Part shown: positions 2,048 through 62,474 of the stretch, one piece after another
Layout of the letters: each line of letters starts with the position of its first letter
Position numbering within the stretch: the first letter of the stretch is position 1
DNA from: Marsupella aquatica
Taxonomy: Eukaryota; Plantae; Marchantiophyta
Direction: 5' to 3'
NCBI GenBank assembly: GCA_973895155.1
Contig: OZ316899.1
Location: forward strand, 891,573-955,572
DNA: 64,000 nt
Translations under genes and position numbers: made by a program
Notes under the pieces: model-generated
What the model saw: only the letters and a program-made list of their open reading frames with translations
The model's database searches: none
What the model was told of the DNA's origin: nothing

Positions 2048-2061
2048 TAGCCCCCTACTTA
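2048..2061 (-). other. F1 polypurine tract
   Basis: Minus strand TAAGTAGGGGGCTA immediately precedes TGTGGGA of the 3' LTR. Confidence 0.85.
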
Positions 2062-2087
2062 AGTGTGCAGCGTCCCCGCAAACACAC

Positions 2088-5000
2088 TTATTCCTGATTA
2101 AAGTACCTTTTCAACCTATCATGATGCACTCTAGTAGGGAACACCTCTCCTTCAAGAGTAGCAAGCTGAATTGACCCATTAGCATAAACCTGGTGAACAA
2201 CATAAGGACCCAACCACCGAGTATGCAACTTGCCTGGAAAATGAGCATACCTACTGTCATAGAGTAATACCAGTTGTCCAGCAAGTAAAGAAGTTGGCTT
2301 CTTCAACTTCTTGTCATGATGTTGCTTCACTTGAGCTTGCTTCTTCTTCACTTGCTTGCTTGCCTCTTCCCGGATTTCCTCCAACTCCTCCAGCTGGTAA
2401 GCTCTCTCCATTAAACTCTGGTCAGCCTCCATTCTCTCCTCCACACTTACCCTCAAAGTAGGCACTTCAAACTCAACAGGTACAAGGGAGTGTTGTCCAA
2501 ATACTAGGTAGAAAGGACTATGGCCGGTTGTGGTCTTGAAAGCAAGGTTGTAGGAGTACACAGCTGAGTATAATTTGTCATCCCAATCAGTCTTGTGTGC
2601 CGCCACGGTTTTGTTCAAGATCTTGCCAATGATGCCATTAGCTCTCTCCGTTAATCCATTGGCCTTGGGGTGATAGGGGGTGGTCTTCCTATGCTTAATC
2701 AAGTAATGGTTAGTGAGCTCCTCCACAACTTCATTCAAGAAGTGAGTCCCCCTATCACTAACCAGCTCTAGAGGTGGCCCAAATCTGGTAAAAATCTGTT
2801 GATACATGAACCTTGCTACTGTGAGAGCATTATCCTTGCTGGTTGGTCTTGCCTCTACCCACTTAGTAGCATAATCAGTTGCAAGAAGGATGTATCGATT
2901 CCTTCTAGACCTGGTCACAGGAGTGATGGGACCTATGAAATCTATACCCCACTTCTCAAAAGGTGCAAGAGGTAAGATGGTGGTAAGAGGGTGATGCCTT
3001 GAGTGAGCTGGCTTACCTGTCCTTTGGCAAGGGTCACATCCCCTCACAAAAAGACTTACATCCTTATGAAGTGTTGGCCACCAATACCCTGCATCAAGAA
3101 TTTTCCTTGCTGTTGTTGCACTTGCATAATGGCCACCAGCCTCCTCCTCATGCATAGCTCTCATCACAATGGAGATTTCCTTCTTCTCCAAACACCTCCT
3201 TAGTCTCCCATCAACTCCTTCCTTGTGAAGGACACCCTTCACCAATAAGTAAGGTCTGATTTTTCTCAGGAAAACAGCAGCCTCCTCTTGGTTCAAATCT
3301 CTTGGTAGCCGGGTTGTGAGAAGAAATTGGATGATATCCAAATACCATGTATCTCCTCCACTTCCCACATGAAAGAGGTCTTCATCTGGAAACTGATCAT
3401 CCACCTCCTTCAAGTCCTCTTCTCCTTCAATCCTTGAGAAGAAGTCTGCATTCCCATGCTTCTTACCAGGCCTGACCCTCACCTCATAATCAAACTCTTG
3501 GAGCAACAAGATCCACCTTGCCACTCTACCAGTTACATCAGGTTTATTCACCATATACTTGAGAGCATTGTGATCAGTATGAAAGACCACCTTATAGCCC
3601 AACAAGTAGTGCCTAAACTTCTTACAAGAGTAGATGATTCCTAGAGCTTCTCTATCGGTTGGTGAGTAATTCTTTTCAGCTGGTGCCAATAGTCTACTTG
3701 CAACGTAGATAGGGTGATCCCTATTCTGGTCATCAAGTTGACTAAGCACCACACCAATACAAAAGCCAGACACATCCACATACACATGAAATTCTCTACT
3801 CCAATCTGGTGCTATCAAGATAGGGGCTTCAACCAACCTGTTCTTCAACTCCTGAAAACTTGCTAGCCTCTCAACTGAGGGTTCAACCTCAGCCCCCTTC
3901 TTAAGCATGCTGGTTAGGGGTAAAGCTACTTTAGCAAAGTCCTTAATGAACCTTCTATAGTAGTTTAAACATCCCAAGAATCCCCTCAACTCTGTCACTG
4001 AAGTTGGAAACTTGACAGCCATCCAAACAGCAACCTTCTCTTGGTCCACTTCTATGCCCTTCTTGGATACCTTGTGGCCAAGTAGTATCCCTTCTTCCAC
4101 ACCAAAGAAGCACTTCCCTGGGTGAAGCTTCAAACCAACTTCCCTACATCTTTGGAAGGTCATCCTCAAATGTTCAACATGGTCCTTCCCCCTTCCAAAA
4201 ACAGCAAAGTCATCTATGAATACTTCCAAGAACTTTCTCAAGTAGTCATGAAAGATATTCATCATCAACCTTTGGAACATACCAGGGGCATTACAAAGAC
4301 CAAAAGGCATCCTCCGAAAGGCATAAATCCCCCACTCAGTAGTAAAGGCTGTCTTCAACTGGTCCTCCTTCCTTATCCAAATCTGGTTGTAACCTGAGTA
4401 CCCATCTAGGAAGCTATACACTTCCCAACCAGCTACTAAATCAAGTACCATATCAGTAAATGGAATGGGATAGTGGTCCTTCTTAGTGGCCTCATTGAGT
4501 TTCCTAAAGTCTTGGCAAACTCGGATCTTAGGCTTACCATCCAAGCCTGGTTTCTTTGGTACTATGACAATTGGAGAAACCCACTCACTATTCAACACAG
4601 GATAGATGAAACCTGCTTCCAGCAATTTGTCTATCTCTTCCTTCACCATCAAGGAGTACTTGGGATTCATCCGATATTGCCTTTGTCTCACAGGTGAAGC
4701 TCCTAGCATCAAGTCGATTCTATGCTCACCAAGTTCAGGGTTTACACCAGTAAGATCCAAGTGACTCCAAGCAAACACATCCACATATTCACCTAGCAAA
4801 TCTTGGATAGTTTTCTCTTCACCTGATCCCAGGGCATTTCCCAAGTTGAAGGTCTTGTCTTGCTGGACAGAGATGGTTCTGTACTGCTCAGCTCGAATCA
4901 CCTCCATCTTGTTCCTCATTGTGGAGTCAAAAGTGCCCTCAAGTTGTGCCAACCTCATGCCTCCATAGACGGGTGCATTTTCAGCACTTAACTCCTCCTT

Positions 5001-8000
5001 CTCCTTGCTTGAATGCTGGTCTTCCTGAGTCTCATCCTCCTCTGAGTTTGCAGCCTTCAATTGGTCCTCTAGCTCCTTTATCTTGAGCTTTAACAAGGCT
5101 AAGTGCTTAGCCTTTAAACTCTGGTCATTACTCCTTGTCTTGATCTCAACTTGGGCAGCACCCTTGCTGGTCTGATCAACCTCCTGAGCCATTGTGATAG
5201 TGTCTTCTTGGTTGCTCTCCTTGGCTGAGGTCTCAGCCTGCTTCACCTCCTCGAGACTGGTCACTTCACTGAGACTGGGCAGAGGTGAATGGCTGGTAAG
5301 AGCCTCCTGCTCTTGCTCCTCTCCAAACACTTCTTCTTCAGTCCATTGGCTCACCATGTTCAACATGTATACCTCATCCTCATCAGATTCAGATTTGGTA
5401 CTCAACTCATCGGAAAGTTCAGAATCATATTCATCCAACTCATCAGTAGTCTCTCCTTGATGCTTGTCATGACCCCATGAAACTGAAGTGGCTGGTTTGC
5501 CAAACCTAAACTCCTTCTTGCCCCAATCAGACACTACTTTGGCTCCATATAGCCAAGGCCTCCCAATCAAGATTGGGTAAGTAGATGGCCTTGCTGGTCT
5601 CATCACCAAGTAATTCAACAAGAACTCCTGCCCCCCAATGAGAGTAGGTACTTGAGTAAGTGTCCCCACCGGTAGCACTCTTGCTCCATTTGCTAGCCTC
5701 ATTGTCCTTGCTGTTGGCTGAAGTTTCTTGAAACCTAGTTGTTGGGCAGTAGCCTCAATCATGATATTCACACCTGAGCCTCCATCAACTGGTACATACG
5801 AGAGTACACACCCATTTACTTGAACATCAATCTCAGGTGCTCCAAGGTCTTCACAAACCATCATCACATCAGCTGGGGTACCAACCTTTGGAAGCTTCCT
5901 TCTTCTCCTTCCTACCAACATCTCCTTCAGTTGCCTCCTATACAAAGGGTTGTCTTTGATCAGCTGCCCCACTGTAGCAGTAACCAAACAATCTTTCACA
6001 TCCTTCTTGATGTCATAAGAGGGTACCTTGCTGGTCTCTTTCTTCTCTTCCACCTCAGCTTTTTCCTTCAAAGCTTTAGCAACCTTCAGGTCTTTGTTGA
6101 TGGCCTCTTGATGCTCCTTAGCCTCCATCTCCTCTAGTTGCCTCTTGACTTCCTCATTCACCTTGGGATAGAAGAGCTTCGGATGGTCTCTCTTGTAGTC
6201 ACTATCTTCAGCTGGTGGGACTTGAACTTCTGCTCCAACTTCAACTTCGATTGGTGACTCCGTTGAGTGCTCCTTTCTCTCCTTCCTCTTCTTCCTCTCT
6301 TCCACTCTTTCCTTCTTTCTTGTGGACCTGGTAGACACCTTGTAACACACAGCTTCCTCCTCAGGTGTCTCCATTCCTGGTAGATCTGGCTGGTTCTCCC
6401 CACCAGCAACTTGTGTCACTCCATCTTTGGCCTCCTCTTGCCACTCCATACTCAAGAAGTTCACTGTGGCTTCACCGGGAGCCTTGGCAACCGCTGGTGG
6501 TGGTGCTTCTATCCTTCCTATCATCATCTTGGCAGCAGATCCAATAGGACAGTTGGCTGTGGTATGACCCTCCCTTTTGCACACAGCACAAAGAGGATAG
6601 GGAGCTCCTTGTCCCTGCCTCCTTGGTTCGGGGCAACTGTTGGAATAGTGCCCTGGTTTTTGACAGTTCCAGCAGATCACCACGGTAGTTCTTGCCACTC
6701 CCCCAGGTCCTTGAGGTCCCATTTGATCCACCATCCTTGGTTGAAGACCAGGCATCAGTTGAGGTGCCATGGGTGGAGCTGGTCTTCCTTGCAAAGTTCT
6801 TGGGCCTCCTGAAATCTGGTACACCATCTCCGGGGCTTCTTCATAGAAGTAGTCCACCACTTCACTTGCTTGATAAACATCGTTGGACTCTTCATTGACA
6901 TACTGAACTTGATTCCTCCAACCTTGACACTCTTGAGGTGTATGGCCAAAACTCTTGCACTTGACACACCATACATGGGCTCTATTCACCGGCACTTTTC
7001 TCCTATCAGGTTGCACACCAGCAAAGTGAACTGATAGGGCCTTGAGTTGGTTGGTGATCTCACTCATCTTGTTATCCATCACCTTCTTCTCCTTGGTTGC
7101 TGGTGTAGAACCTTCCACCAAGTTGAAGGTTGCAGATTTGTGGTGCTTACCACCTGGCTTCTTCTTGCTGGCTCTCCTCTTCTGGTCGCTTTTTCTCTTT
7201 GCCTTCTTCTTCTTCTTCTTCTTCTTCTTCTCGGAGTCCTCCTCAGAATCAGATTCTGAATCAGAACTGGAACTACTCTCCTCAGATTCCGACTCAGAAG
7301 TATCCTCAACTGAACTACTTGATTCACTTGAGCTAGAAGAAGAATCACTATAAGCAAATCGCTTCTTCTTTCTCCTACTCTTGGAACTAGAGATCTCAGC
7401 ACTCCTATAAGACTGAGCCGCCTCAATGGCCTCATCCAACGTATTAGGGTGAGATTGCCTTACTGAGACACCCATCTTCTTGGGTAGGCTTGCCACAAAC
7501 CAAGCCAACAACATGGAGTCTACTGGTCTGGGGTCAAGCTTGGTAGCTAACCTTTGAAACCTTTGCAGAAACCTCCTTATTGACTCCTTGGATCCCATTC
7601 TGATCTCTCCCATCTTGATCAGAGCTTCCGATTCTTCTCCCACCTTCCTAAACTCCTGCAAGAATGCTAGCTTGAAGGCATCCCAATCATTCTTGATGGC
7701 ATTTGATAGGCTATTGAACCAAGGTCTTGCTTCTCCTCTCAAGACCCCCGCCAAAGTGGTCAACTTAATATCAAACTCTCCATTGGCTTGGGCTGTCCCA
7801 ATGAAGTCCTCCAACCAAGCATCAGGATCCTCCTTGGGCTTGCCATGGAATGTCTTGTACTGAAATCTTGCTCTTTGAGTCACCACCATGGCTGCTTCTT
7901 GATCTTCACTTGTGTTGGTAGTGGAAGAAGATGTATCACTCCACCCTACACCAGGTTCCGCTTCAGCTTGCAAATGAATGTCCACCCAATCTGGTTGCTC

Positions 8001-8066
8001 CAACTGGTCACCAAAGTTGAAACTAAGAGAGGCTTCTTTTAGTGCTTGACTCCTTGTAGTGGGCAT
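2088..8066 (-). CDS. Gag-Pol polyprotein (single uninterrupted ORF; first ATG at 8066, ORF track extends to TTG 8156)
   Basis: Gag motif YKTFHGKPKEDPDAWLEDF, three CCHC knuckles, protease VDGGSG, RT FLDGYSGYNQI/PFGLCNAP/FIDD, RNase H YVDVS..EALGI..TDH, integrase GGH..CDPC/WGIDFIGP/SDRGTHF/ERANG. Confidence 0.97.
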   Translation of the reverse strand: MPTTRSQALKEASLSFNFGDQLEQPDWVDIHLQAEAEPGVGWSDTSSSTTNTSEDQEAAMVVTQRARFQYKTFHGKPKEDPDAWLEDFIGTAQANGEFDIKLTTLAGVLRGEARPWFNSLSNAIKNDWDAFKLAFLQEFRKVGEESEALIKMGEIRMGSKESIRRFLQRFQRLATKLDPRPVDSMLLAWFVASLPKKMGVSVRQSHPNTLDEAIEAAQSYRSAEISSSKSRRKKKRFAYSDSSSSSSESSSSVEDTSESESEESSSSSDSESDSEEDSEKKKKKKKKKAKRKSDQKRRASKKKPGGKHHKSATFNLVEGSTPATKEKKVMDNKMSEITNQLKALSVHFAGVQPDRRKVPVNRAHVWCVKCKSFGHTPQECQGWRNQVQYVNEESNDVYQASEVVDYFYEEAPEMVYQISGGPRTLQGRPAPPMAPQLMPGLQPRMVDQMGPQGPGGVARTTVVICWNCQKPGHYSNSCPEPRRQGQGAPYPLCAVCKREGHTTANCPIGSAAKMMIGRIEAPPPAVAKAPGEATVNFLSMEWQEEAKDGVTQVAGGENQPDLPGMETPEEEAVCYKVSTRSTRKKERVEERKKRKERKEHSTESPIEVEVGAEVQVPPAEDSDYKRDHPKLFYPKVNEEVKRQLEEMEAKEHQEAINKDLKVAKALKEKAEVEEKKETSKVPSYDIKKDVKDCLVTATVGQLIKDNPLYRRQLKEMLVGRRRRKLPKVGTPADVMMVCEDLGAPEIDVQVNGCVLSYVPVDGGSGVNIMIEATAQQLGFKKLQPTARTMRLANGARVLPVGTLTQVPTLIGGQEFLLNYLVMRPARPSTYPILIGRPWLYGAKVVSDWGKKEFRFGKPATSVSWGHDKHQGETTDELDEYDSELSDELSTKSESDEDEVYMLNMVSQWTEEEVFGEEQEQEALTSHSPLPSLSEVTSLEEVKQAETSAKESNQEDTITMAQEVDQTSKGAAQVEIKTRSNDQSLKAKHLALLKLKIKELEDQLKAANSEEDETQEDQHSSKEKEELSAENAPVYGGMRLAQLEGTFDSTMRNKMEVIRAEQYRTISVQQDKTFNLGNALGSGEEKTIQDLLGEYVDVFAWSHLDLTGVNPELGEHRIDLMLGASPVRQRQYRMNPKYSLMVKEEIDKLLEAGFIYPVLNSEWVSPIVIVPKKPGLDGKPKIRVCQDFRKLNEATKKDHYPIPFTDMVLDLVAGWEVYSFLDGYSGYNQIWIRKEDQLKTAFTTEWGIYAFRRMPFGLCNAPGMFQRLMMNIFHDYLRKFLEVFIDDFAVFGRGKDHVEHLRMTFQRCREVGLKLHPGKCFFGVEEGILLGHKVSKKGIEVDQEKVAVWMAVKFPTSVTELRGFLGCLNYYRRFIKDFAKVALPLTSMLKKGAEVEPSVERLASFQELKNRLVEAPILIAPDWSREFHVYVDVSGFCIGVVLSQLDDQNRDHPIYVASRLLAPAEKNYSPTDREALGIIYSCKKFRHYLLGYKVVFHTDHNALKYMVNKPDVTGRVARWILLLQEFDYEVRVRPGKKHGNADFFSRIEGEEDLKEVDDQFPDEDLFHVGSGGDTWYLDIIQFLLTTRLPRDLNQEEAAVFLRKIRPYLLVKGVLHKEGVDGRLRRCLEKKEISIVMRAMHEEEAGGHYASATTARKILDAGYWWPTLHKDVSLFVRGCDPCQRTGKPAHSRHHPLTTILPLAPFEKWGIDFIGPITPVTRSRRNRYILLATDYATKWVEARPTSKDNALTVARFMYQQIFTRFGPPLELVSDRGTHFLNEVVEELTNHYLIKHRKTTPYHPKANGLTERANGIIGKILNKTVAAHKTDWDDKLYSAVYSYNLAFKTTTGHSPFYLVFGQHSLVPVEFEVPTLRVSVEERMEADQSLMERAYQLEELEEIREEASKQVKKKQAQVKQHHDKKLKKPTSLLAGQLVLLYDSRYAHFPGKLHTRWLGPYVVHQVYANGSIQLATLEGEVFPTRVHHDRLKRYFNQE

Positions 8067-8172
8067 GCCACTCACAATCACCTTCTTATCTCCCTTCTTC
8101 TCTTGAACAGCAAACCTGCAAACACACCTCCAAGTCTTGTGGCTCCACTCCAACAAAAACTGTAAAGAGTTG

Positions 8173-8190
8173 TCCCCGGCAGCGGCGCCA
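8173..8190 (-). other. F1 primer-binding site complementary to tRNA-Asp 3' end
   Basis: Minus strand TGGCGCCGCTGCCGGGGA; one mismatch to the recalled plant tRNA-Asp end TCCCCGGCAACGGCGCCA. Confidence 0.85.
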
Positions 8191-8200
8191 AAAACAAGGG

Positions 8201-11200
8201 TGGGACTCTATGTCAAACACTTGCCAAGGAGCTTAAGCGGCTTTTCTCCCCAAAAGACTACCTAATACCTGCTCCATGTCATACCAGGGTCACAAAGGAT
8301 TGACAAAACTTCTGAAGTGTGCTTACAATGTCCAATCACTCCATACATAAGTAGTTTCAACTCTCCACTTCTAGAGAGGTAGTCCCCTTGACTACTTTTG
8401 TACTCACCCCTTCCCCTCTCCTCTACTCCAAGGATCAGCAAGGGGGATCTCCGCTCCAAGCTGTCACCTTAGAGTAGATTCTCACACAAACACCCAAGAA
8501 CCCAAAGTACTTTCCTCTTCAAGCTTAAGTCTCCTCAAGACCCTCAAAGTAGTGTTACCCCTCAACCTTGCCCCCCTGGCCTTGGTTTGGGTCCACACAT
8601 CCCCTTTGAGCCCTAGAGAAGGCTCCTCTATCTAAGGACTCTTCCTCTTGTTCTTACTTCTTGTTAACACCACACACCAAGCAAAGTACTTTCCACCCTC
8701 AAGCTATAATCCTCTCTAAGTCTCAAAGTAATGCTATACCTTAACCTTGCCTCCTTGGCCTTGGTTTTGTACTAGCACATCCCCTTCAAGCTTAGACCAA
8801 GATTATACCATAGCATGGACTCTTCTCTTGCTCTCATATACTTCAAATGCACTCACACTTAATGGTCACAATGAAGATTGGTAAGTCTCCTTTTATTGCA
8901 TCACCTTTACAACAAAAGTTCACTACACATTCTCCACACTAAGCATGGACCACCTCTCCTTTCTCAAGCTTAGCCCTACCTTGGCAAGGTAGAGATTTCA
9001 CTTAAGAGATGAGACTCCCGGTCCCTAACAAATGAAAACTTCCTCCTTATATACTATCTCCTTCCACATCACACCAAGCTTGACCTGGGGTCCAACTATA
9101 CCTCCCCCAAGTCCTCCTAACACACAAAGTCCAACTCTATAGTTCATAGCCCACCCTACTACTTGCTATTTTGCCTCCTTCCAAGCCCTGGAATATGCCA
9201 CACATGAGTGGTATGCTTTGACTTCCAAACCTACTCCCACTTATGGTCCTCCTCACCAGCTTACCAACCCACTTGAAAGCTCGCAAAAAGAGTGAGTGAG
9301 TCTCAAGTTGTGCCTAGTCAAAGTTGGCCTTATTTTACTTGTAACCCCTTTACTACCCTAAGTAAACTACCCCCTATATTTACTTTTCTTAACTTGATGG
9401 CCTTACACCTTTGGCCAAAGGTAAGTACCCTTCTCTAGAGCCTAACTCAAGTGGTATGGGTGCAAGAAAGGTCAGCCCCTAAATCTGGTATTCATTCCCC
9501 TATGCCGACTTTGGTTTGCAAGTTGTCGGGACTCCCTCGTGGCCTCGGTTAAAAATATATTTGAGTGATTACTTTTCTGGGGTTCCACCTTCACCAGGGG
9601 GTGCCTTATCTTCCCCTAACTCAGCACAAAAAAATTTGGGCCCCAACGGATACCTCTAGCCAAAGTTATGCCCATTCTCCCAAGGCCTGTTTTTGGTGTA
9701 AAGCGGGTGTAAGCGGCGGCCCGATTACACTTACCTTACATGCCCCTTATGGGGATTCCACGTGTCATGAGGGGAGAGCACTCTCATTATACTCATGTTT
9801 CTTATGAAGAAATTGTAAGGACAGCAATGTTTGCAGCCATTTCTCTCTCGTGAATTCAATCTAAAACCACAGCATTCTCTATTGGATTCTTTCTTGTGCA
9901 GCAGTCCAGCTGATCAGCCGCCAGCCCCTCAATTTCACAGCCACCATAGCTCACAGCCAGCCTAGTCAATTTCGCAGCTAGCTCACCTCTTCAATTTTGC
10001 CGCTAGCAACACAGTCAATTTCGCAGCTAGCAGCACAGTCAATTTCGCAGCTAGCAGCACAGTCACATCAGCGCATTTACAGCACAACAACAGCAGATTT
10101 GAAGCACAGCAGCAGCAACCATAGCTTGATTCCTTCTCAGTCAAGCAGGTCTCTCTTCTCAATTTCGTAGCTGCCCACCTTTGCAATTTCGCAGCTAGCA
10201 GCAGCATCATTCAATTCAGCAGCATCAAGGCAGCAGCCAGCCAATTCTCATGAGCATCTCGTGCCTGATTAGTAGGAGCACCTCTAATCTAGTGTGCAGC
10301 TGTCATAGCAGCAAGCAGCCTTCCCAATTCAAAGCCAGCAGCGATCCTAATTTGCAGCCATAGCTCTTTTCCTTCTCAGCAGCCATAGCTTCTTCAATCA
10401 GCAACAGCCCTTGCTTCTTCAATCAGCAGCAGCCATTTCAATTCAGCCGCCCTTCCTTCAATTCAGCCGCCCTTGTGCTCAATTGATTCCTCAAGTAATC
10501 ATGCAGCACCTTTGGACAGCCTCCCGGTGCTTGACGTCCTCACCAGCCTCGTGCTTGCTCCTCCTTGCCTCGTGCTCGCTCCTCCTTGCCTCGTGCTCGC
10601 CGCGTGATCGTCGCCCACGCGGTTTACACTTAGAAAAAAATACATTTTTTTTTGGAAAAACAGCATTTTGGGGCGATTTTGGACCCCCCTCCAAAACTCA
10701 CACATAAGTCCAAAAGGACTTCTGAGTAGCTCCACTGATTCTATGGACATAGGACTATGTCCGGGTTTACTAAGATATAAACAAAACCCTATAACAACTT
10801 TTCTAAAATTAGGCAAAGAGGGTCAAGTCTTTATGTCTTCCAAAATTCTTCTCAACTTTGAGATGCTCCCAAAAAGTAACCAAGTGTGACAAAGTTGTCC
10901 CACAAGTTTCTAGGGATAGAGGGGACCATACTTAACCCACTTCCAAACTTGGAACCCCTACATTTACCCATCAGCTATTTTTCCCGGGACCCGCTATTTG
11001 GTAACTTTGATTTTTGCCAAAATACTTATAACTCCTAGGTTAAGACCCCACTTGACTTCATACTTTTTCAGGGTTCCCTAGGGACCTCCCAGCACCCATG
11101 GGAGAAATATCAGCCAAAAATAAGATGTCCGGTGTCGGGTCATTTTTCGGTCCCGACTTAGTCGCCTATTATAACTAAGGACGGAACTAGTTTCCTGCCC

Positions 11201-11399
11201 CTCCTATAGTAACTTGCTTACCCCTAGATAACTTTGCATAACTAAAATTCCCTCTTACCTCTACTAAGCTTCCCTTCTTACTTAAGTGCCCTAAACCTAG
11301 CTACTCTGATAGCACTAAAACTTTTTCCCTAACTATTTCCTCTTCTAAACGAAAGAATGTCATGTTTCTCTACACTAGCTGACACTGAGCCATCCCACA
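8201..11399 (-). repeat. F1 5' LTR, ~3.2 kb (inner boundary uncertain by ~10 bp)
   Basis: Right 2047 bp match the left LTR; TGGGA at 8201 mirrors TCCCACA at 11393..11399; candidate TSD TGGTC at 11400..11404. Confidence 0.85.
8484..8830. repeat. Degenerate ~180-bp tandem duplication inside the F1 LTR
   Basis: Two copies of CAAAGTACTTTCC..CTCAAGCT..CTCAAAGTA..AACCTTGCC..TGGCCTTGGTTT..CACATCCCCTT..GGACTCTT. Confidence 0.75.
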
Positions 11400-13964
11400 T
11401 GGTCCAGCAGAGATTCGTTCTCTCGCCTCGCCGCGTCCGTCTCCTCTCCTGCCTCCTGACATGCCTCCTCCAGCTGCTGGGCGTCGCTCGTCAGTTTACC
11501 CACCAGCTGGTCCTGCTTCTCGGCCTCGGTTTGGAGCCGCGCCATCTCGGCCTGCAGCGTGGCTATCTCCGTCGCGTCCCGCTGGGCTCGCTCCTCGGCC
11601 TCCTCCAGGTCTTTCTGCCAGGTGACAGCTTGTTTCTTCAAACTGTCAATCTGGTTCCGGAGTCGTGTAATCTCGGCCTCGTTCCCAGCTTTGGCCTGTT
11701 CGGCTAGGGCGGTAAGAGCGTACGCCTTTGCTAACAACTCATCGGCAGCTGCAACCTTGGGTCGTAGTTGCAGAAGCTCAGCCTCTTGAGCCGCTACTTC
11801 GTTCTTTAGGTACACGGACTCCACCCGGTACCGCTCTATCCTCTGAAGGGCCTCCGACTGGGCCCGACCTGCCTTTACGGCGGCAACCAACTCCTGATTG
11901 AAGAAACAGGCTACCTTCCGGGCCATGAACTCCCCGGTATCCCGGGCAATTTAATGAGAGAAATCTCCCAGAAGCCCGTTCAGAAACGTACCCTGTACGA
12001 AGAGTTCCGGGTGGTCCAAGTTGTGCCTGTCCGGATTTGGGCACGGGCAGACATCAACACGCGCAGGGGCCGGGGCAGTGACGTCCAGCCCTGGGGACAT
12101 AACGTTGGAAGGGGCTGGAGTGTCCTCCTGCAGCGATGTCCGGTTCTCCGGAATTGCCACCAGCGGGTCCTTGGGAGACCCGGGTTCGGGTAAGACCTCT
12201 GCCGTACCAACTTCTGTACTTAGCCCGGCTAGTTGGGTCGCATCAAAGGTTGCGACGACCGACCCCTCCGGCGCCTCCTCGGTTACGATTACAGCTATTT
12301 GTGGAGGTGGGGTGGGTGAAGTTGGCGTGTCCACTGGACTTCGGGCCTCGGGTTGGGGCCGTCTCTCCAATGCCGGAAAAACCCACCTAGCTGGGACCAG
12401 CTTTGTAACGTTGATGCGGGGAAGGGTTCGTCGATCAAACCGGGCGTACCACTCAAGAATGATTTCGATGTGGCTAGCGAAATACGCCTTCCCACCAATG
12501 TACAGCGTCTTCCTTCGCCGCTCCATCTCTTCATGGAATTTCTTAGCGAAGTACGACGCCCATTTCCTAGGTCGATAGTTCTCGACCTGGATAACCTGGG
12601 CAGCGGAGATCTCCCCCCGGGGTTCCATCATGTGGAGAGCGTACCTCTGGAACTCCAGCCGCTCAGCTATCTCGGGCATGAGGCAGGTCCTCATCACGAA
12701 CCCGTTGTCTACTGATCCCTCTGAGGGAAAACTTGAAGATTGGTACTTGGCCCCCTTGCCCCCGGGAGCCCGTGATTCGACTCGATGGTCACCTTCGGGT
12801 AACCCGAAGATCATCTTGAGCCGTTCTTCTGTGAGGGACATATTCCTTCCCCGCAGCCGAGTCTGTTGACATACGTCGTCATAATTCTTGACGAATTCTG
12901 TCATGTCCTCCCCGTAGTACCTGCAAGTGTTCCAGGGGAGAGAGGTGAGGTGCTCAAATCCCTGAGTCTTCAGGTACACCGCATGCTTGGGATGGAGGAT
13001 GTTGCTATGAACGTTTCCCCCATGCGATGCATGGTCACCTTGGCTACGGCTACCGTGGCCAACGGTAACCCGGACGCAGTGGCGGATTCCTTCCTCTTCT
13101 TTCCCCGTGACTGACTCGGGGAAGGTGATACTTCCCCATCCTCCCGATCGGGCCTGGGGAGTGCCACTGCGGTTGGTAACGGGCCCGGGGCGGCCACGGT
13201 CACTATGTTGTCTGCTGGGGCCGCTCCTGGGGTCAGAGCAGGGGGTGGGGACGATATAGTGTCGGCCCCCGAGCGCTTGTTCCTCTGGGCCGCCTGGTCA
13301 AGGGTGGGGTAGCCTCGTCGTCATCGCTAAGATCCACAGTGTTGATGACGGAGCGTACCTGTGCTGGCTGGGTGATAGGTGGTGGGGTTTGGCTAGGCTA
13401 CGGCTGAGGCTGAGGCTGAAGCTGAAGCTGAGGTTGAGGCTGGGGTTGCATGGGCACGGGTACGGGTACGGGTACGGGCCTGGCTGAGTTGGTCATGTTG
13501 GTTGATGGCCGAGTTCCCATGAAGCTCTGCAGGTGCTGGTAGAAGTTCTCCGAAGCGAGTGCGGACGCCCTTGTCGAACGGTTGGTACTGGACTCGCCGT
13601 TAATGACAGCCCGAACCTGGGCAGGGATGTGGTCGAAGTGATGTCGCTGCAGGTCGATTGTACCCGAGATATTGAAGACCTCGTCCGGAAGCCGAAGCAA
13701 TGCTTCCCAGAACCCGATATATTTGTCTCCGTTGCAGAAGTACCCAGATACCTCAGCTGGTCAGTAAAGCTCGCTCTGAGACGGGTAGTCAAAGTTAAGG
13801 ACGTAGTGGTGTCGTCCTGCTAGGCGGATGGCTCTCTCGTATTCGCGTTCGATCTCGTATCGGCGCGGGTTGGCGTGTTTCAATGAATCGGCCAAGTGCC
13901 TTCCGGTAGATAGGAACTGCGTCCAGAATCGAATGGCCGAGCTGGAGAGGATCGTGTGCGACAT
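11400..13964 (-). pseudogene. F3 LTR-encoded PMD-like plus coiled-coil protein, with stops and frameshifts, truncated by F1
   Basis: AIRFW N-terminus, in-frame stops at 13761 and 13398, core GFEHLTSLPW/EFVKNYD/LTEERLKMIFGLPEG/DNGF/PRGEISAAQV aligning to the F2 LTR ORF; coiled coil in 11400..11926. Confidence 0.75.
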
Positions 13965-14280: not shown

Positions 14281-17200
14281 TCATGGCACAGGCACACTGT
14301 TGGCATCTGCATCTCTGAATTCGCCTCCTTCAGCAAATGCATCTACCCTTGTCACAGGAATGAAGTCCCCGCTATCATGAACTACAGGCACTTGGTCTGA
14401 ACGCCGACGATCAAAGGCACTATGAGAGTGTAAATGAAACTCAAGGTTTGATCCTTCCATCCGACGTTGCCTGGCCTGTTTATGACACACTACACGCCAA
14501 CCTGGGGAGTCTTCCACATCCAGGAAGAAAGCTTGCTCCACCTGACTAGGAAACACAAATGGCTCAGACCATTCGGGCAATTTCCCTCTGAAATTGGCCA
14601 GCAAGAAACCGTCGTTGTCTCTCTTCATGGTAGCCCTGTTACCAAGCCAATCCTGCCGCACCCATGAACCTTTCATAAGAATCACAGGACTGGACACCGC
14701 CCCATAGTCCAGAGCCCATATGTCAACTAATTCTCCCACATATCCCATCTCCATCCAGGCCCTGTCGTGATTGTGGCTCTGTTGCTCAAATACAGTGATG
14801 AGCCCGCAGTCATTCGTCACCTTGTAGGCACTGTCACCATCCTTCACTCGGAAGTGATTCCCATATGCTCTCATCCGTTTGTAAGTCTTCACTTTCAGGC
14901 TAGGGGCATTAGACAGTAGGTAAACATCTGCATCCATGTCTGGGTGGGTCTCGTGATGCTCTCTAATTGCCACTCTGATCCACTCCATGAAACCTGGAAA
15001 AGTTGTTCCTGCAGTGGGATGGGCCGCCTTCAATGACTCATACTCCCTGAACGAACAACCACACAGCATTAGCTTGGGTAAACATGAACAGGCTGAAGGA
15101 GAAAACCACACGAACACAACATTTAAGCTCATGAACTGGATTATAGCACATGTATGCACTCACTATATCCAGGGTTCCATCACCACAGTGTTGTGCAATA
15201 CAAAGTCATGTGCCAAGTCTCTCATAGATATGGTCAGGTTCTTTGTGGTTGCAGCCCCTTCCAGTACTTCACCTATCACCCCTTCCTCCTCATCAGAATT
15301 CCACACCCTGGTCTTCACATGCTCATATTGTGCTATGTATTCGGTCAAAAATCCCAGAGTCTCATCCTTGATGTAACCTTTAGCCATGCTTGCTTCAGAT
15401 TTGTAATATGTTCTCACGTGACCTTTGAGTAGCTTCATGTACCGTTCCAAAGGGTACAACCAACGAGCACTCACAGGCCCAAATTGGTGTAGCTCTTCCA
15501 CAACATGGACAAGTAGGTGGGTCATGACATCAAAAAATGCGGGAGGAAAATAAATCTCCAGGTCACACAGCACCTGAGCGACATCTTCTGTCAGTTGTGG
15601 GAAGTGTGTTTCATCCCAAACCTTCACACAAATACGACGAAACACATCATTGAGTCGCATGATCACAGTACGAACAGGCTTCTGCAACAGGCCCCTCAGG
15701 CATAAAGGCAACACCTGTTGCATCAACATATGGTAGTCATGGCTTTTCATACTACCAAGCTTTCTAGTCATGATATGCTTCTTGAAAGCACTGCCATAGT
15801 TTGAAGGAACCTTCAAAGAACTCAACCTCTGCACAAATAGTTCCCACTCTGTGTCTGTCAGAACATAGGGCGCTTGGTACTTCAAGAGCACATCAGCTCT
15901 GTGGGCATGTGGCCTCAACCAAAGATGGGGTTTCATTCCCCTCTGTTCAAGATCCAATCTCACTGAACCAGTGTCTTTCTCTCCACACAAGAATCTGAGT
16001 AGACTCTCACAAATATTCTTTTCAATGTGCATAACATCAATGTTATGTTTGCTTGGCTCAAACTCCTGCATCGTTGCAATGCAAAAGCGTCAGGAAATGC
16101 CTCAAGTTTAGTCTCTCTCTTCGAAATGAATGCACATGCTCTGAACCAAAACATGTATCCCAATTAGCATCAACTCCAAGAGGCTTACCCTCCAGTACTT
16201 GAGCTCCAAGTCCAATATGCTCAGTCTTTTTACACCATATCGCTTTATTGGATCACTCACTCCATCTTCCCTGCCCCCTCGTTTGATATAGTCATCCCTC
16301 AGTGCTCCCCACTGCCTGATCTCCTCTTTGGTCACTCGTGCCGGGGGTCCACGTTGCTCAATCTCATTGCCAAAGTGTGCAATCAGTGCCTGTCTTTCTC
16401 TGTAAGGGTGATCTGCCTTCAGAAAATGACGATGGCCCATGTATATCACTTTCTGCAGGGCTCTGGAGTACTCACTGGTGACATTGCGCCCACAGATAGT
16501 ACAAGCACAATATCCTTTTGTTGTTTGGCCTGATATCATCCCATAGGCTGGGTAGTCAGCTATAGTCAGAATGACAATGGCTCTAAGGATGAATGGGTTT
16601 AACCTCCCAAGCCTCTGTAGGACATCATATGTGAGAACTCCTTCCTCCCAAAGCTTTCTCAATTCCTCCACTAGGGGAGCAAGAAACACATCTATGTTGG
16701 CAGATACAGCACTGTCTGGCCCTGGTATCAGTAGGACCATCAGAACAAAAAATCGCTTTGTAGTCATCCAAGGAGGAAGGTTATAATTCAAAATAGTTAC
16801 AGGCCAGCACGAAAATTTGTTGTTCTTGTCTCCAAATGGGTTTACCCCATCCAATGACAGCCCAAGTCTGACATTCCTCGGCTCAGCAGCAAATTCGGGA
16901 TACATCTCATCTATGAGTTTCCATTGCCTTGAATCTGCAGCATGTCGTTGTAGCCCATCATCACTTTTCTTGTCAGTTGCCCAAGTCATCATCTCCGAGA
17001 TGGCACGGCTTCTGAACATCCGCTGAAGTCTGGGAATGAGTGGAAAATGACGAAGTACCTTGGCGGGAACCATAGACTTTCCTGAGTTCCGATACCTGTG
17101 CTTCCCACACTTAGGGCATGTCAACGATTCTTTATACTCCTTTCTGAAAAGAACATGCCCATCAGGACAGGCATGGATCGAATCATAGTTCAATCCAAGA

Positions 17201-18012
17201 TTAGATATGCATCTTTTTGCCTCGTACATGTTCTTGGGCAAAATATTACCATCTGGTAGCACAGTTGTTTGCAAGAATGCCAACAACTCAGAAACCAAAA
17301 CGTTGGGGACATTGTGGTTGCCGCAAATGTTCAGGAACATGATGACAAATCCCAGTTTAGAACATTTGCTACCGGGGTACAAAGACTTCCTGCCTTCCTG
17401 TATTTGCAGGGGAGAGCCAAACATCCCATCATGCCCAGGGGTTTCCTGCCCTATCTCAAACTCATCAAGAGGCTCTTCGACAGGGGGCACACTTGCATCT
17501 GCAGCCGTATCCTCTTCGTTGTCCAGCCCATCATGAAATGCATCCAAGTCTTGGAAGATGTCTCTCACCATCTCTTCCACATGAATTCCTTCGTCACGTG
17601 GTGCTGCCTGAGCACCATCCCGTTGGAGAGCTGACAACCCACAGAGACTAGCTACAACATTTTCAAATGCACCAGGCAGAACCTCACTTGCCCGTCTTGC
17701 AGCATTGGCAGTATCAAATTCTAACCTCTACTCCTCGTCGGAAGAATCTTCCTCTGCAGGATCATTCCAAACTCGATGTCGTGGATCTCTTCCATGAACC
17801 GCGATATGCCGCCAAACCTCATTCAGACCCCTGGTACGGGATCCTTGGCAGATTGCACAAGGACATCTCATCCTACTGGCTCCTGAAAGTCTGGTTCGTA
17901 ACCTTTCACGCTGCCAAAGCTTATTATCATGGCGTGATATCCTTGTGGGATGATGCAAAGGCAATGCCTGTGCCCTGGGCTGGGTCTGGGGAGGGTGGTG
18001 ACCAGGGTGCAT
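14281..18012 (-). pseudogene. CACTA/En-Spm TnpD (Tnp2) transposase, spliced, with a premature stop
   Basis: Transposase-associated CPCxxC..H domain; Transposase_21 motifs IHACPDG, LRHFPLIPRLQRMF, RNVRLGLSLDGVNPF, NYNLPPW; DUF4218-type DVMHIEKN, KSHDYH, FFDVMTHLLVH, RWLYPLERYM; DUF4216-type PFVFPSQVEQAFF; GT-AG introns ~16066..16188 and ~15047..15163; in-frame TAG at 17728. Confidence 0.93.
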
Positions 18013-18445
18013 TGTAACAGGCTGGGAGCTCTGCAGTCATGGACAGCAGTGAACAAGGATGCCTAATGGTGGTATTTGTGTTCCATATATCCCTGACTGT
18101 ATCTGCCAAAAGAGTTAACATAACGTGTACTAAATTCTCACAAACCCTAAACCACCCCAAAAGAAAAAAACAGGTTCGCAAGTAGTGTACCTATTGTCAA
18201 GTGAATGACACAAAATTCCTAAATGTTGGAGGGTGTCACCACCTCCTCCGCTGTCCTCAAATGTACCGCCTCTGCATGTACGTTTACAGTGACACCCCCA
18301 GGCAGCAGGAAACAACAATCCGCCAACAGTAAAATAAGCCCAACTGCCACCAACCATAACAAGGTACATTAGTTCAAAGATCACATTTATTTCAATGATC
18401 TGATTTATACAAAAAAACTTGTGTCCAAACTGATGCTACTACTCC

Positions 18446-19318
18446 TCACTCTGATTCAGAATCGCTAATGACCCATTCCTCACTTGTTGTCTCATAGTCC
18501 TCTCTGTAAGGATCCTGACCCTTCCGTGGCCAGGCCTCAAAAAGATCATAGTCCATTGGGTTTTGACGCTTCCCAGCTGCTACTGATTCCACAAGCCAAG
18601 CATATGAAACCACAAACACATTATGGGACATGACATAAAAGCGAATGTCTCCCTTCCCAAACTTGCGGCAGGCTTTGGGATATGACTTAGTAATGACATG
18701 AGTGGTGTCCTCTGTTATATTCTCCTCCACTGTCCCACCTAGGTCAAGCACTGTGGACTTGTACACTTTGCACTTAACCTCTCCAATTCCCGCCTCCACA
18801 AATACCATGCTCAGCCCTTTCAGAATGGGGGTTGGTTGCTTCGTCTCCTCAGCCAACATACTCTTCAGCCTTGTAGAGCTCTGTCCTTTGTTGAGTACAG
18901 GTCCATATTGGAGATCAGCAAGCCGTGCCTTTGCTTCCCAGACTTCTTGTTCAGCCCAAGCTGATGCAGTAGCTTCTTCATCCTCCCACAACTCATATTG
19001 CTCAGTATCCTGTACAATCTTATGTGCTATGGAATCTGTGATCCAAGAGGCCTCAACTACTTTTAGGCCTTGCTTAGTAATTGCAGAATTCATGTAGGAC
19101 CATGACCACTTCTTTATCACTGATAGCCATGTCCCTGCAACAACATGTGTAGTCTTTGGAGTGATGTCCTGAACTACAGTGCCATGGAGCTCAGAGAATC
19201 GTTTCTATACAGTTGGCCAATGCACTTTGGTCAACCCATGCTGGCCATGGACCAAAATCGCTCTGACCCCTGTAAACACTGCTGGGTGGTCACACTTTCT
19301 ACGTTTACCAGGCTCCAT
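18446..19318 (-). pseudogene. Tandem BRCT-domain protein (290 codons, one premature TAG at 19205..19207)
   Basis: ATG 19318 (MEPGKRRK) is in frame with ORF 18446..19120; two repeats with TTHVV/TTHVI and ASWITDS/YAWLVES BRCT signatures. Confidence 0.8.
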
Positions 19319-19910
19319 GTACACACACCCTACGTGATGACAGTGAATTTTGGAAGAATGGGTTCACCTGACAATACAAGGACAACAAAATTCCTGCTTT
19401 TTGAGTTGATCTGGCCCACTGGTGCTCAGGTCCGATTTTGATAGGTACAAGGGATATGTGAACAATACGTACTAGGCACCTGCACGGATGCAGGACATTG
19501 TTTGAATATATACTACAAAATCCATATCCGTGGTGAAATGAAGTGCAACCAACTTGTCATGGCACATACATATTTTGTTGTAAAGGAGGATACATTCAAT
19601 GACAAACTTATAGGGCAATTTGATTAATTGCATGCCTGATAATTTATACGCTTACAACTTAGAAGTCCTGTTTTAATTTAGCAGTCTGATGAAAGTGTTT
19701 ATGAAAATGACCACTCAGCCTAAATACTTCCAAGAAGGCTTGTAAGGATAAGTTTGTATAGGCATGTACCCAGCCACTGACGCCAGAGCACAAGATAAGT
19801 GCTGCCTATATAAACTCGCCTACCCAACTCCTTTTCAAAATTGGAATCTCTGCAATCTCAAAAAATAGTACATCCACATCAGGTGCACTGTGCATGTACA
19901 ATGTTCAGCT

Positions 19911-20591
19911 TCACAGCCAAGATATGTGATCTCTCACAGGAGTGCGCGAGGTAGGATCAATGGCATGGCGATGACAATAAAATATCCATCGATCAACACC
20001 ATGTGCAGAGTGATCATAGATTTCTCTGTCACAAGCATAACCCTCTGCTTGATGATCTTTCAGGCAATGATAGTGCCACATAGTGGGACACCTAGCACAG
20101 TGGACTATGTCAGTCCAGTAGTCATCATCATGCTCACCACATGCCTTGCACCTATGAAGTGGGCAAGCTGTGGCATGAGCAGGCAAACACTCAAAACAGA
20201 AAAATCTCACACAAAAACGGTCTGGACATTTCCTAACATTTGCTGCAGCATCAACAGAGCCCTCATAGGACCCCAACTTCCCACACTGTGCACACTTAGC
20301 CTGCTTCTCCAAACAATCAGTGCACATCCAGTCTCCCTGGTGTGTTGACGGGAGGCCCACCCCTGGACAGTTGTTTTCTGCAGCAAGGTCAGACTCCGGG
20401 TTGAGGTGGAAATGCCTCATGCAAGGGCCCTCACAAATGACCAGGCCCCCACCATCGTCACAAATGGCACAACAATGAGCTGCCTTCTGGAAAATTTGAC
20501 TTGCAGAGAAGTTAGTAGCATCTGCCCCAAGTACACCTGTGTTTCTCACCTCTGTCACACGCTTTTTGGCTTGAATTTTAGGCCGTGCCAT
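19911..20591 (-). CDS. Stand-alone EDM2-type PHD-finger module protein (226 aa)
   Basis: CAICDDGGGLVICEGPCMRHFH..C..C..C..CGKLGS..CPLHRC..C..CARCP..H..CL..FYCHRHAID..TPVRDHI matches the recalled EDM2 PHD region; no stops or introns. Confidence 0.85.
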   Translation of the reverse strand: MARPKIQAKKRVTEVRNTGVLGADATNFSASQIFQKAAHCCAICDDGGGLVICEGPCMRHFHLNPESDLAAENNCPGVGLPSTHQGDWMCTDCLEKQAKCAQCGKLGSYEGSVDAAANVRKCPDRFCVRFFCFECLPAHATACPLHRCKACGEHDDDYWTDIVHCARCPTMWHYHCLKDHQAEGYACDREIYDHSAHGVDRWIFYCHRHAIDPTSRTPVRDHISWL

Positions 20592-20602
20592 GCCTGCGCA
20601 TG

Positions 20603-20746
20603 AGATAGACTCTACAATTTAGCAGACTGCACAGAAAGTAAAATATATTTAGCATTTAAGGTACAAAGGCATTTAGATAGACTCTACAATTTAGCAGACT
20701 GCACAGAAAGTAAAATATATTTAGCATTTAAGGTACAAAGGCATTT
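20603..20746. repeat. Perfect 72-bp tandem duplication
   Basis: 20603..20674 = 20675..20746. Confidence 0.95.
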
Positions 20747-21363
20747 GCTACTGCAATGAATTGGAATGGCCACACAAGGATGCAGAGCACACATACTTTT
20801 GGTATGTTGAGCCCACACACAAAACTGATCCCCTAATACAATTTCTCCACCAACACCTCAATTTTAATTGTGGCTATGATTCACCAAAGGAGATCTGCAA
20901 CAACATTTCATGCATTTGAATCACATACAACAGTCGTGACATGTAAAACAGGCATTCTTCGAAGAGGATTGGTATGAAGCAGTGTCATAAGGGTTGAAAT
21001 TTATACATCCTAAATAGGTTATGATAGTGGCTGAGACAAATAAGTGAGGCATAAATCACATTTTGCATATTATCACATGGCCCATTAATTCATTCAACGT
21101 TGCAATGTTCACTAGGTTAAAGCAGTCATGAAAGTAGTCTTTCAATAGAGACTTTTATGCGAGTTTGCTAGCCTCTTAAATTAGGATATTTTGCTTAGTA
21201 CAGGCATAATAGGATATAAGTTATGTACTGTTGACCCTAAACCCTGGACCCAAAATTGCTCATACATCAAAATTTTAAGTAAATATCCTCTGTGTTGAAG
21301 TCAGAGTGTTAAGCTATAGGTCAATGGTATCTGGTCTGTGCATGCGGTGTGACAAGTGGTCCT

Positions 21364-21813
21364 CTAGAGCATGTGATCCAAACATGTGTAGACACCAAAG
21401 TCACCGGTGGTGGGGTCTGGGAGGGCAGGACAAGTGACATCACCAGGCACACTGCAGGATGGCGAGTGGTTCCAGATGATACATTGTGCTCTGTGCAAAA
21501 ATCGGCATCCAAGAGAACGGTCATCCAATTCTGGGCCAGAAGCCCTACAGGCAGGACAGTCATATTGGCAACTGTGTACACACCCTTGGCACCTAATTTG
21601 TGGCGGGTCATGTACAAGAGACACAAATACCAAGGATGTCGGGAAGGGTACTGAAGCAGGTAGAGGCCGGCTGTAGTTGTTCTTGGAAACAACAGGGTAC
21701 TCAAAGTACCATGCAGACTGGGCTGGAAGGATCCCAAGTCTGACATACTCAAGGCGCAACATCTCTGCCTTGCGTGCAAGTCGCACATGTTCAGCGTTGC
21801 GGGTCCTCACCAT
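21364..21813 (-). CDS. Cys/His-rich putative zinc-finger protein (149 aa), unassigned
   Basis: ATG start, basic N-terminus, CQGC..CQYDCPAC..C..H..C..H..C..C..CLDH; same strand as the neighbouring genes. Confidence 0.5.
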   Translation of the reverse strand: MVRTRNAEHVRLARKAEMLRLEYVRLGILPAQSAWYFEYPVVSKNNYSRPLPASVPFPTSLVFVSLVHDPPQIRCQGCVHSCQYDCPACRASGPELDDRSLGCRFLHRAQCIIWNHSPSCSVPGDVTCPALPDPTTGDFGVYTCLDHML

Positions 21814-22821
21814 AAGTGTTGCTTTCGTTGTGATGTCCTCTGTTCACGTCCTTTGATGAGCAAGGTGAGCAGGAGGTCGACTTGCCTCGCCAACAGCAAC
21901 CACCTAAACTAATCAGTTCCCACTCATTGTCTTGGTTCCAACTACAGGTCATAGTATACACATAGCATGAAACGTGCATAGTACATATTTGATTCTGAGT
22001 TTATGAGTTTCCTAAGACAAAGAGCTTGGTGATAAACCCATATTCTCGACGGACATGTATATCAATCATATTAAACTCCTGTTTTTTCATCCAGAAAGAC
22101 CGAAAGTCTCACCTTGCAGGTTGCAGCAGAGAGAAAATTCACTGGTTGTCGTGTTGTGCAAGTGAACCTCCACTGATGCCCCGGTGTAGCCCCTCAGATG
22201 CAGGTGACACTTACCAACTCCCAAGTTGCCTGGTCTAACAGAAAATGCTTATATCTTCAGAACTTTATAGAGCAAGTACATGATCACATACTTCTGGATC
22301 TATTCATATTTGGAACTCTTGCCAACTACAACTCCCATTATGCACAAGCTCACATCAACAGAGAAAGATACAGAATGCATACTTACTATGGCTCTAAGCA
22401 CCTTCACTACCTTGTTGAACCCAGTCCTGAAGTCTTTTCAGCGTGTTTGTTGTGCTGTCTCCTTTGGCACCCAACACCTTAGTCCTTGATGTAACAGAAT
22501 GCGATTTTACAAGTTAGATGCTTTGGAACCTTCTATGGTCTTAGCTGAATTGATGTCATCGTAAGTGGTGAAAGACAAGGAAGACGAAAGCTGGTTGAAG
22601 AGCTATGGACAACACACTAGCATGAAGTGCTTCAACCAATCCACTGCCAAACGGAACTCTTACACAGTCACATTCTTTCAGTAAACAGAAACTCAGTCAA
22701 ACTTCATAATCAAAGTACAGACTCTGAAGGACCAAAGGAGGATGTTGTGAGTTTCTCTGTTGTTTAATGTGTTACCCTTCTAGTTTCGAAGTTAGCAAAT
22801 GCTGAATAATGTGTCTACCAG

Positions 22822-25892: not shown

Positions 25893-25954
25893 CCTCCGCC
25901 TTGCTTGCAGTAACCAGCCTCCGCCTTGCTTGCAGTAACCAGCCTCCGCCTAGC
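25893..25954. repeat. 25-bp tandem repeat (CCTCCGCCTTGCTTGCAGTAACCAG x2.4)
   Basis: Units at 25893, 25918 and 25943. Confidence 0.9.
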
Positions 25955-62392: not shown

Positions 62393-62474
62393 TTTTCCTT
62401 GTTTTGTCACTATACTAAGGTGTTCCTAGGGTGCCTTCCTGCTTTACCCACTTAACCGGCCGAGTGATTCCTGT

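Follow-up and report, generated by a model that had tools for sequence, protein, structure and literature searches.

A CACTA-type transposase preceded by a candidate accessory array of Cys-rich, EDM2-type PHD and tandem-BRCT genes in the liverwort Marsupella aquatica

In a 64,000-nucleotide stretch of the Marsupella aquatica genome (GenBank assembly GCA_973895155.1, contig OZ316899.1, positions 891,573 to 955,572 of the forward strand; hereafter, the window), a TnpD transposase gene is preceded by three compact open reading frames (ORFs) encoding a Cys-rich protein, a triple-PHD protein and a tandem-BRCT protein. The reading that we favor, with moderate confidence, is that this locus represents an inactivated member of a CACTA (EnSpm) lineage that carries a selected accessory array (Cys-rich, PHD, BRCT and, in some copies, an F-box-like gene) ahead of TnpD, with the functions proposed below. 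Taken separately, it is likely that the array is cargo of a CACTA lineage, and the functions proposed for its proteins are tentative.

Linkage of the array to a CACTA transposase

An earlier annotation made from the letters of the window (hereafter, the original prediction) had described four minus-strand units arranged head to tail, and all four were found at the coordinates it gave: the Cys-rich, triple-PHD and tandem-BRCT ORFs followed by TnpD, separated by spacers of 773, 593 and 434 bp (Table 1). The basic starts that it had likened to nuclear localization signals are conserved within families, as MVRTR, MPRTR or MPQTR in the Cys-rich proteins and MARPK in the PHD proteins.

The TnpD unit (18012-14281) matches the Pfam models Transpos_assoc, Transposase_21 (E=1.7e-70), DUF4218 and DUF4216 and has 1224 relatives at E<=1e-30; judged by these domains, it is a transposase of the CACTA/EnSpm type. 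All four pieces into which the ORF finder divides it share one frame, and the apparent breaks near 16100 and 15165 correspond to two short GT-AG introns whose donor and acceptor positions are conserved in the homologous contigs L007, L008, L020 and L023. For intron 1, the donor TGGAGG/GTAAG and the acceptor are kept in L007, L008 and L023, and the donor is also kept in L020. TnpD and BRCT were searched as separate pieces. By amino-acid identity, the nearest TnpD relative is the P0012 protein cluster (70%), which includes contig L023; at the nucleotide level, L023 is 66% identical to the window TnpD over 3.1 kb. This contig comes from run ERR9963768 of a Sphagnum fallax microbiome, and L007 comes from an S. 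balticum microbiome (IMG 3300047167) (both PMC9584203). The best named match in an annotated flowering plant, from Asparagus, is just 37% identical. The sequence upstream of TnpD in these relatives amounts to 426 bp in L023 and 42 bp in L008, which is too short to show preceding genes.

The linkage is seen most completely in L021, a 5.5-kb contig from a JGI metagenome that was reached via the most distant Cys-rich relative. L021 carries Cys-rich, PHD and tandem-BRCT genes, an F-box-like ORF and, running into the contig end, the N-terminus of a TnpD. Its proteins share with those of the window 26% (Cys-rich), 43% (PHD), 32% (BRCT) and 54% (TnpD N-terminus) of their residues; kept at such low identities, the order has survived a long divergence. 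Parts of the same order recur on three further contigs: Cys-rich and then PHD in L022, PHD and then a BRCT protein (E=5e-13) in L002, and the last PHD codons, approximately 510 bp, BRCT, 432 bp and an F-box-like ORF in L006. At every locus, all units lie on the strand of TnpD. The same order in L021, together with the partial orders elsewhere, therefore suggests that the cassette travels with the transposase. To this extent, the linkage with TnpD conserved in L021 and the partial orders of L006, L002 and L022 bear out the original prediction, in which a CACTA lineage carries a toolkit for chromatin reading and DNA repair; the ends of the mobile unit were not found.

We considered whether the cassette might instead be a second, unrelated mobile element or a composite that habitually nests upstream of this TnpD family. 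The upstream boundary has not been located, and the composition of the array is modular, with an F-box-like gene present or absent and a different third gene in L022, both of which would suit such an arrangement. However, no second transposase, integrase or reverse transcriptase lies between 18012 and 27000, and the common strand of the units with TnpD at all loci also speaks against it. The spacing after BRCT is likewise conserved, at 434 bp to TnpD in the window, where the F-box-like gene is absent, versus 432 bp to the F-box-like ORF in L006, and the two loci share a non-coding block in this spacer. Between 18012 and 18446, where a transposon end would have counted against the original prediction, none was seen, and it is here that the block conserved with L006 lies. 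We therefore regard two independent elements as quite improbable.

A further possibility is that the small ORFs are host genes, or a host gene cluster, beside a CACTA transposase, their adjacency having arisen by segmental duplication or through a domesticated TnpD locus. Such an origin would account for the lack of an enclosing terminal inverted repeat (TIR) or target site duplication (TSD), for a TnpD contig without the cassette (L020) and for the purifying selection on PHD and BRCT, as is seen in host genes. It sits poorly with the recurrence of order and strand with TnpD at 26-54% identity and with the few homologues found among billions of proteins. Moreover, the non-coding flanks of the PHD ORF are repeated, aligning at approximately 81% with L001 and L003, and several diverged lineages occur in single sequencing runs, as exemplified by two diverged PHD lineages (P0002 and P0003) in SRR18067351. 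The window copy, which lies amid transposable elements, is itself decaying and has acquired stops in BRCT as well as in TnpD. The PHD flank repeats, the spacer block and the two PHD lineages per run fit a repeated mobile unit better than a host locus, and we consider a host cluster unlikely.

Protein families of the array

A word search returned five PHD relatives of 217-245 aa with 37-82% identity. In the alignment of five homologues, the Cys/His columns of the zinc ligands are all invariant and the C-terminal tail ...RDHISW(L) is conserved. Against PDB, the ORF matched the PHD block of NSD2 and NSD3 (E=1e-10). Its best match was to residues 232-436 of a 1295-aa protein on metagenome contig L009 (30% identity, E=1e-24), with an alignment that extends through a common TPVRDHI tail (TPxRDHI motif). 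In the L009 protein, the PHD block is accompanied by an RFD-like domain at the N-terminus and by an NPPF motif of the methyltransferase-like kind. We call this protein EDM2-like because EDM2 is described with the same architecture; EDM2 is a nuclear factor that has PHD fingers as well as a methyltransferase-like region and that influences the silencing of transposons (PMC3632883). The window ORF (226 aa) comprises the PHD block, without the RFD-like N-terminus or the methyltransferase-like region. As the L009 architecture is EDM2-like and the match is limited to the PHD block, the window protein is, by homology, a stand-alone EDM2-type PHD block, and the label "EDM2-PHD" given in the original prediction is justified by the L009 alignment, TPxRDHI motif included. 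A metagenome scan with the PHD profile returned solely distant EDM2-like host genes (26-46% identity), which helped in naming the module but gave no information on its genomic context.

The BRCT unit is intronless. In the window ORF, Pfam detected the second BRCT alone; the first, which carries a stop, was recognized by homology to the protein P0006, in which two BRCT stretches are detected and to which the window ORF aligns, so that the designation "tandem BRCT" was right. One intact relative was obtained by search (53% identity) and further ones by context in L002 and L021. The BRCT profile matches the BRCT domains of Rtt107 and BRCA1.

For the Cys-rich protein, an exhaustive, profile-free search among 1.84 billion representatives gave 13 matches, approximately eight of which are full-length proteins of about 150 aa with 25-57% identity. 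Common features of the family are an MVRTR-type start and the motifs C.HSC..C..CR and WNH, and its alignment (A2) contains invariant Cys/His columns. No member matched any Pfam family, and a profile search against PDB gave no meaningful sequence match. The AlphaFold model is of moderate confidence (predicted local distance difference test score, pLDDT, 69) and shows a helix at the N-terminus, a small sheet and a region rich in Cys and His; a Foldseek search of PDB with this model found no fold match. The Cys-rich protein is thus a new small protein family without a known domain or fold. The segment from residue 102 to 124 (C..WNH...C) finds as many as 18 repeated matches within long proteins that are otherwise unrelated (P0131, 1054 aa; P0134; P0136), one of which has a weak CHY zinc-finger match; a short zinc-binding motif may be shared. 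Viral and prokaryote genome collections, when scanned, contained no relatives; the Cys-rich alignment was too variable to serve as a query in such scans.

The F-box-like ORFs of L021 (4134-4712) and L006 (1866-2246) are 43% identical (E=5e-31). The gene sits between BRCT and TnpD in L021 and after BRCT in L006. No F-box gene or remnant was found in the window.

Because homologues were found for each of the ORFs, chance is excluded as their origin, and all three cassette families are, on the evidence of these homologues, real genes, with starts and stops conserved across copies in each family. The ratio of nonsynonymous to synonymous substitution rates (dN/dS) is 0.26-0.33 for PHD and 0.45 for BRCT (versus L006), and by this estimate both are under purifying selection. 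These properties bear on whether the units could be non-functional, transduplicated host fragments that are passively carried (Pack-CACTA capture). CACTA elements do capture host gene fragments, and the PHD module is clearly host-derived. Complete ORFs whose starts and stops are conserved over deep divergence, dN/dS values of 0.26-0.45, well below 1, and invariant zinc ligands are not what passive carriage predicts, and we consider this explanation very improbable.

Putative splicing signals, the search for element ends, and decay of the window copy

The original prediction had noted an AG 2 nt before the PHD start codon. This AG is present, as a CAG (20596-20594) ending 2 nt before the ATG, and it is recurrent: by eye, a YAG lies 2-9 nt before the PHD ATG in 7/7 copies. 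Under a stricter rule (YAG <=12 nt from the ATG, with the preceding 15 nt >=60% pyrimidine), acceptor-like sites were found in five of the seven PHD copies, corresponding to 4/5 independent lineages, compared with a background of 9.8% (binomial P ~4e-4). As the acceptor-like site exceeds background across copies, its conservation supports a putative 5′ intron before PHD. A 72-bp tandem duplication (2.0 copies) located 12 nt upstream of the PHD ATG doubles the acceptor-like ...ctttctgtgcag site; it is absent from L001 and L003. Acceptor-like sites, as judged from the sequence, also precede the other ORFs. The statistical support is for some 5′ splicing at PHD and does not extend to the one alternatively spliced leader for all genes that the original prediction had raised as a possibility.

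The common strand, the short spacers and the acceptor-like sites 5′ of the ORFs could also be expected if the units were exons of one big fusion protein (Cys-rich, PHD, BRCT and transposase). Yet in every copy, the Met motif that opens each unit and the stop that closes it are conserved, and the units differ in frame. The PHD ORF, in particular, stops at or within a few residues of ...RDHISWL in nearly all copies, with P0003 extending by 9 residues. A single fusion protein is thus extremely improbable, and separate genes read from an array remain the reading that we favor.

Several observations weigh against a CACTA lineage that carries such an array. TIRs were searched for by pairing CACT[AG] with [TC]AGTG ends; neither a TIR nor a TSD was found in the window, leaving the mobile unit undelimited, and L020 and L021 yielded no CACTA-type TIR, 3-bp TSD or cluster of subterminal repeats, the TIR search in L020 returning nothing. 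Linkage to TnpD is known at two loci, the window and L021. In L020, where TnpD is 50% identical, the cassette is absent from the 9.5 kb upstream, so the array marks a sub-lineage and not CACTA elements generally. The composition of the array varies, since the third ORF of L022 is not BRCT-like and the window lacks an F-box gene. In alignment A4, the phosphopeptide-pocket residues of the first BRCT are, by eye, inconsistently conserved, with a Ser-Gly/Lys pocket pattern visible in P0006 and inconsistent in the other sequences. When the F-box-like ORFs of L021 and L006 are compared with the F-box and F-box-like models, their E values of 0.0014-0.0034 do not reach the Pfam cut-offs. Finally, the splicing scheme and the co-expression of the units are predictions from sequence.

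With respect to the third ORF of L022 (1926-2150, after PHD), it contains Cys residues and gives a weak ZZ-type hint, and the array seems modular.

That the upstream TIR was not found had been remarked in the original prediction, and our TIR searches had the same outcome. The only candidate TIR pair, at 14250/18051 (11/13 matches), was rejected, being at chance level (0.37 expected), without a TSD and not conserved in L008 or L023. In the interval 21800-27200, 5′ of the Cys-rich ORF, no convincing cluster of subterminal repeats was present; in L021:480-600, short motifs similar to GTCTGRAAA were noted by eye. The upstream flanks of L021 and L022 have no similarity to the window and, because they share nothing with it, the 5′ end is unplaced. 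As no TIR or TSD was found, it is only from its conserved linkage that we place the cassette in a putative mobile unit.

At the other side, the ORFs at 11375-12979 are candidates for TnpA-like genes downstream of TnpD and are without a Pfam family. A Ty3/gypsy element cuts the second of them (11375-11926) at 11400, and the CACTA 3′ end may therefore lie beyond the window, unless it is present but unrecognized between 14281 and 12980. Over its N-terminal half, the 342-aa ORF (11951-12979, minus strand) is 30-45% similar to ORFs at approximately 35.6, 40.7, 48.1 and 61.2 kb, and it may be part of a different repeat family and not a TnpA-like gene. At 13398-13480, a low-complexity Pro/Gln-rich (PQPQPQ...) repeat at the end of a 100-aa minus-strand ORF produces spurious weak matches to L007.

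The window copy has acquired several defects. The BRCT ORF is interrupted in frame by a TAG (19207-19205), the corresponding codon being CAG (Gln) in P0006, an intact homologue of 295 aa, and TnpD exon 1 contains a TAG at 17730-17728, where L008 has TGG; both of these stops, which can be compared codon by codon with a homologue, are G:C>A:T changes. In addition, the codon at the junction of TnpD exons 2 and 3 is a TA/G stop, in place of AG/G or GA/G in homologues. The PHD and Cys-rich ORFs are full length relative to homologues. Because stops occur in BRCT and TnpD while PHD and Cys-rich stay full length, the window copy is, to judge from these lesions, a decaying, non-autonomous pseudo-element.

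The surroundings of the cassette are plant-like DNA made up nearly entirely of transposable elements. The Ty3/gypsy element is apparently very young; its gag-pol frame (2088-8156, minus strand) runs for 2022 aa without interruption, and its left 2048-bp long terminal repeat (LTR) starts at the window edge. On the plus strand, opposite to the cassette, ORFs of 199 and 614 aa without a Pfam match lie at 27134-29402, within 20 kb of sequence (11400-31500) that has no second copy in the window; they could be inside or outside the CACTA element. The region from 37356 to 63913 consists of large nested or tandem repeats, with units of approximately 7.4 and 13 kb that are 93-99% identical (for example, 44774-50229 equals 57830-63285 at 99.4%); it contains long minus-strand ORFs (714-1219 aa) without a Pfam family and a gag-only 997-aa ORF (50759-53752). 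Across the whole window, GC skew of the plus strand is negative in 30/32 2-kb bins (minimum -0.29), and most large ORFs are on the minus strand. An Rfam search of the whole window gave no match.

Table 1. Coordinates of annotated features in the window and in contig L021
Feature	Coordinates	Strand	Details
Window: Ty3/gypsy LTR retrotransposon, young, intact	1..11400	-	LTRs 1-2048 = 9353-11400, 100% identical
Window: downstream ORFs, 342 aa + 183 aa, coiled-coil-like	11375..12979	-	second ORF cut by LTR retrotransposon
Window: TnpD exon 3 (DUF4216)	14281..15046	-	stop 14283-14281
Window: TnpD intron 2	15047..15163	-	GTGAGT...TTCAG, 117 nt
Window: TnpD exon 2 (DUF4218)	15164..16065	-	Pfam and homologue alignment
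Window: TnpD intron 1	16066..16188	-	GTAAGC...TGCAG, 123 nt
Window: TnpD exon 1 (Transpos_assoc + Transposase_21)	16189..18012	-	premature TAG 17730-17728
Window: conserved non-coding spacer block 3′ of BRCT	18285..18362	-	contains ...ggtggcag/ttggg; shared with L006:1605-1682
Window: tandem-BRCT ORF	18446..19318	-	290 codons in one frame, ATG 19318 (MEPGKRRK), stop 18448-18446
Window: EDM2-type triple-PHD ORF	19911..20591	-	226 aa, intact, start MARPKIQAKKR; PHD-1st_NSD, PHD_NSD, PHDvar_NSD
Window: splice-acceptor-like CAG, 2 nt 5′ of PHD start codon	20594..20596	-	sequence
Window: perfect 72-bp x2 tandem duplication	20603..20746	not assigned	Tandem Repeats Finder, 100% match
Window: Cys-rich accessory ORF	21364..21813	-	149 aa, intact, start MVRTR; without Pfam family
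L021: Cys-rich	743-1177	+	homology
L021: PHD	1911-2588	+	homology
L021: tandem BRCT	2947-3948	+	homology
L021: F-box-like ORF	4134-4712	+	weak Pfam-model match
L021: TnpD N-terminus	5085-5471 (contig end)	+	49% identical to P0010 (E=1e-22)

Proposed roles and closest known systems

The N-termini of the cassette proteins are basic, and their domains are of the kinds usual in nuclear factors for chromatin or repair. We propose that the element would express these proteins as nuclear accessories along with the transposase, each ORF probably being entered via a splice acceptor just 5′ of its ATG. Of the roles that can be suggested, we rank that of the PHD protein as the most likely. Stripped of the effector domains of EDM2, it could bind the same histone marks, on H3 tails at the element or at its targets, and might thereby either compete with host silencing readers at the element and shield it (anti-silencing) or act as a tether that brings the transposition complex to chromatin in a chosen state (targeting). 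Ranked second, the BRCT pair may couple the double-strand break of excision or insertion to host repair factors. Third, the F-box-like protein, where present, could deliver a host protein to an SCF ubiquitin ligase for degradation. The more ambitious version of this proposal, in which a CACTA lineage assembled a selected, alternatively spliced counter-defense or targeting module from an EDM2-PHD decoy or tether, a BRCT adaptor, an F-box adaptor and a new Cys-rich protein, is at present doubtful.

To our knowledge, very few DNA transposons are known to encode their own proteins for host chromatin, and VANC is the main worked example. In the literature on CACTA/EnSpm elements with PHD, BRCT or EDM2, we found no description of such an array and, if the proposal is true, this would be the first DNA-transposon toolkit of its kind outside VANDAL/VANC. 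Over deep divergence, the lineage appears to have retained a histone-reader module derived from a host factor whose own role lies in the control of transposon silencing, along with candidate adaptor proteins of repair and ubiquitin type and a protein family that has no known relatives. Should the proteins act on silencing or target choice, they would provide a second, independent system for studying conflict between transposons and host chromatin, located in bryophytes, in which genetics is tractable (Physcomitrium, Marchantia). There is also a warning for the annotation of moss genomes, where small genes of the PHD, BRCT and F-box types may turn out to be carried by transposons and not to be host genes.

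Among the closest known systems are En/Spm and other plant CACTA elements, which share with the window locus the TnpD domains (Transpos_assoc, Transposase_21, DUF4218 and DUF4216) and a multi-gene organization. Known CACTA elements contain TnpD and TnpA-like genes, some with a ULP1 protease, and the products of En/Spm arise from one promoter by alternative splicing. The lineage described here differs in having three to four extra small genes ahead of the transposase and in that no TIR or TSD was found. The likeness to EDM2 itself consists in the NSD-type triple-PHD block with a TPxRDHI tail that both proteins contain; the EDM2-like protein has, in addition, the RFD-like N-terminal domain and the methyltransferase-like region, and the transposon protein has neither. 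The chromodomain integrases of chromoviruses (Ty3/gypsy) are element-encoded readers of histone marks that are thought to guide the landing site; there, the reader is fused to a retroelement integrase, whereas the candidate reader described here would be encoded by a gene of its own in a DNA transposon. Viral F-box silencing suppressors such as polerovirus P0 are parasite-encoded F-box proteins that could direct a host defense factor to degradation. By analogy, this likeness may concern the F-box-like gene of L021 and L006 only, a gene that the window copy lacks and for which the match is weak (E ~1e-3).

Small accessory proteins that work with a transposase are also encoded by MuDR (MURB) and PIF/Harbinger (ORF1) (PMC12973397); these are unrelated proteins and represent one accessory gene each, as opposed to the array found here. 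Finally, VANC of the Mutator-like VANDAL elements is an accessory gene beside the transposase and is proposed to act on the chromatin of the element (PMC10398659). VANDAL belongs to another superfamily, and the cassette upstream of TnpD, which the original prediction had likened to VANC, may resemble it by functional analogy only.

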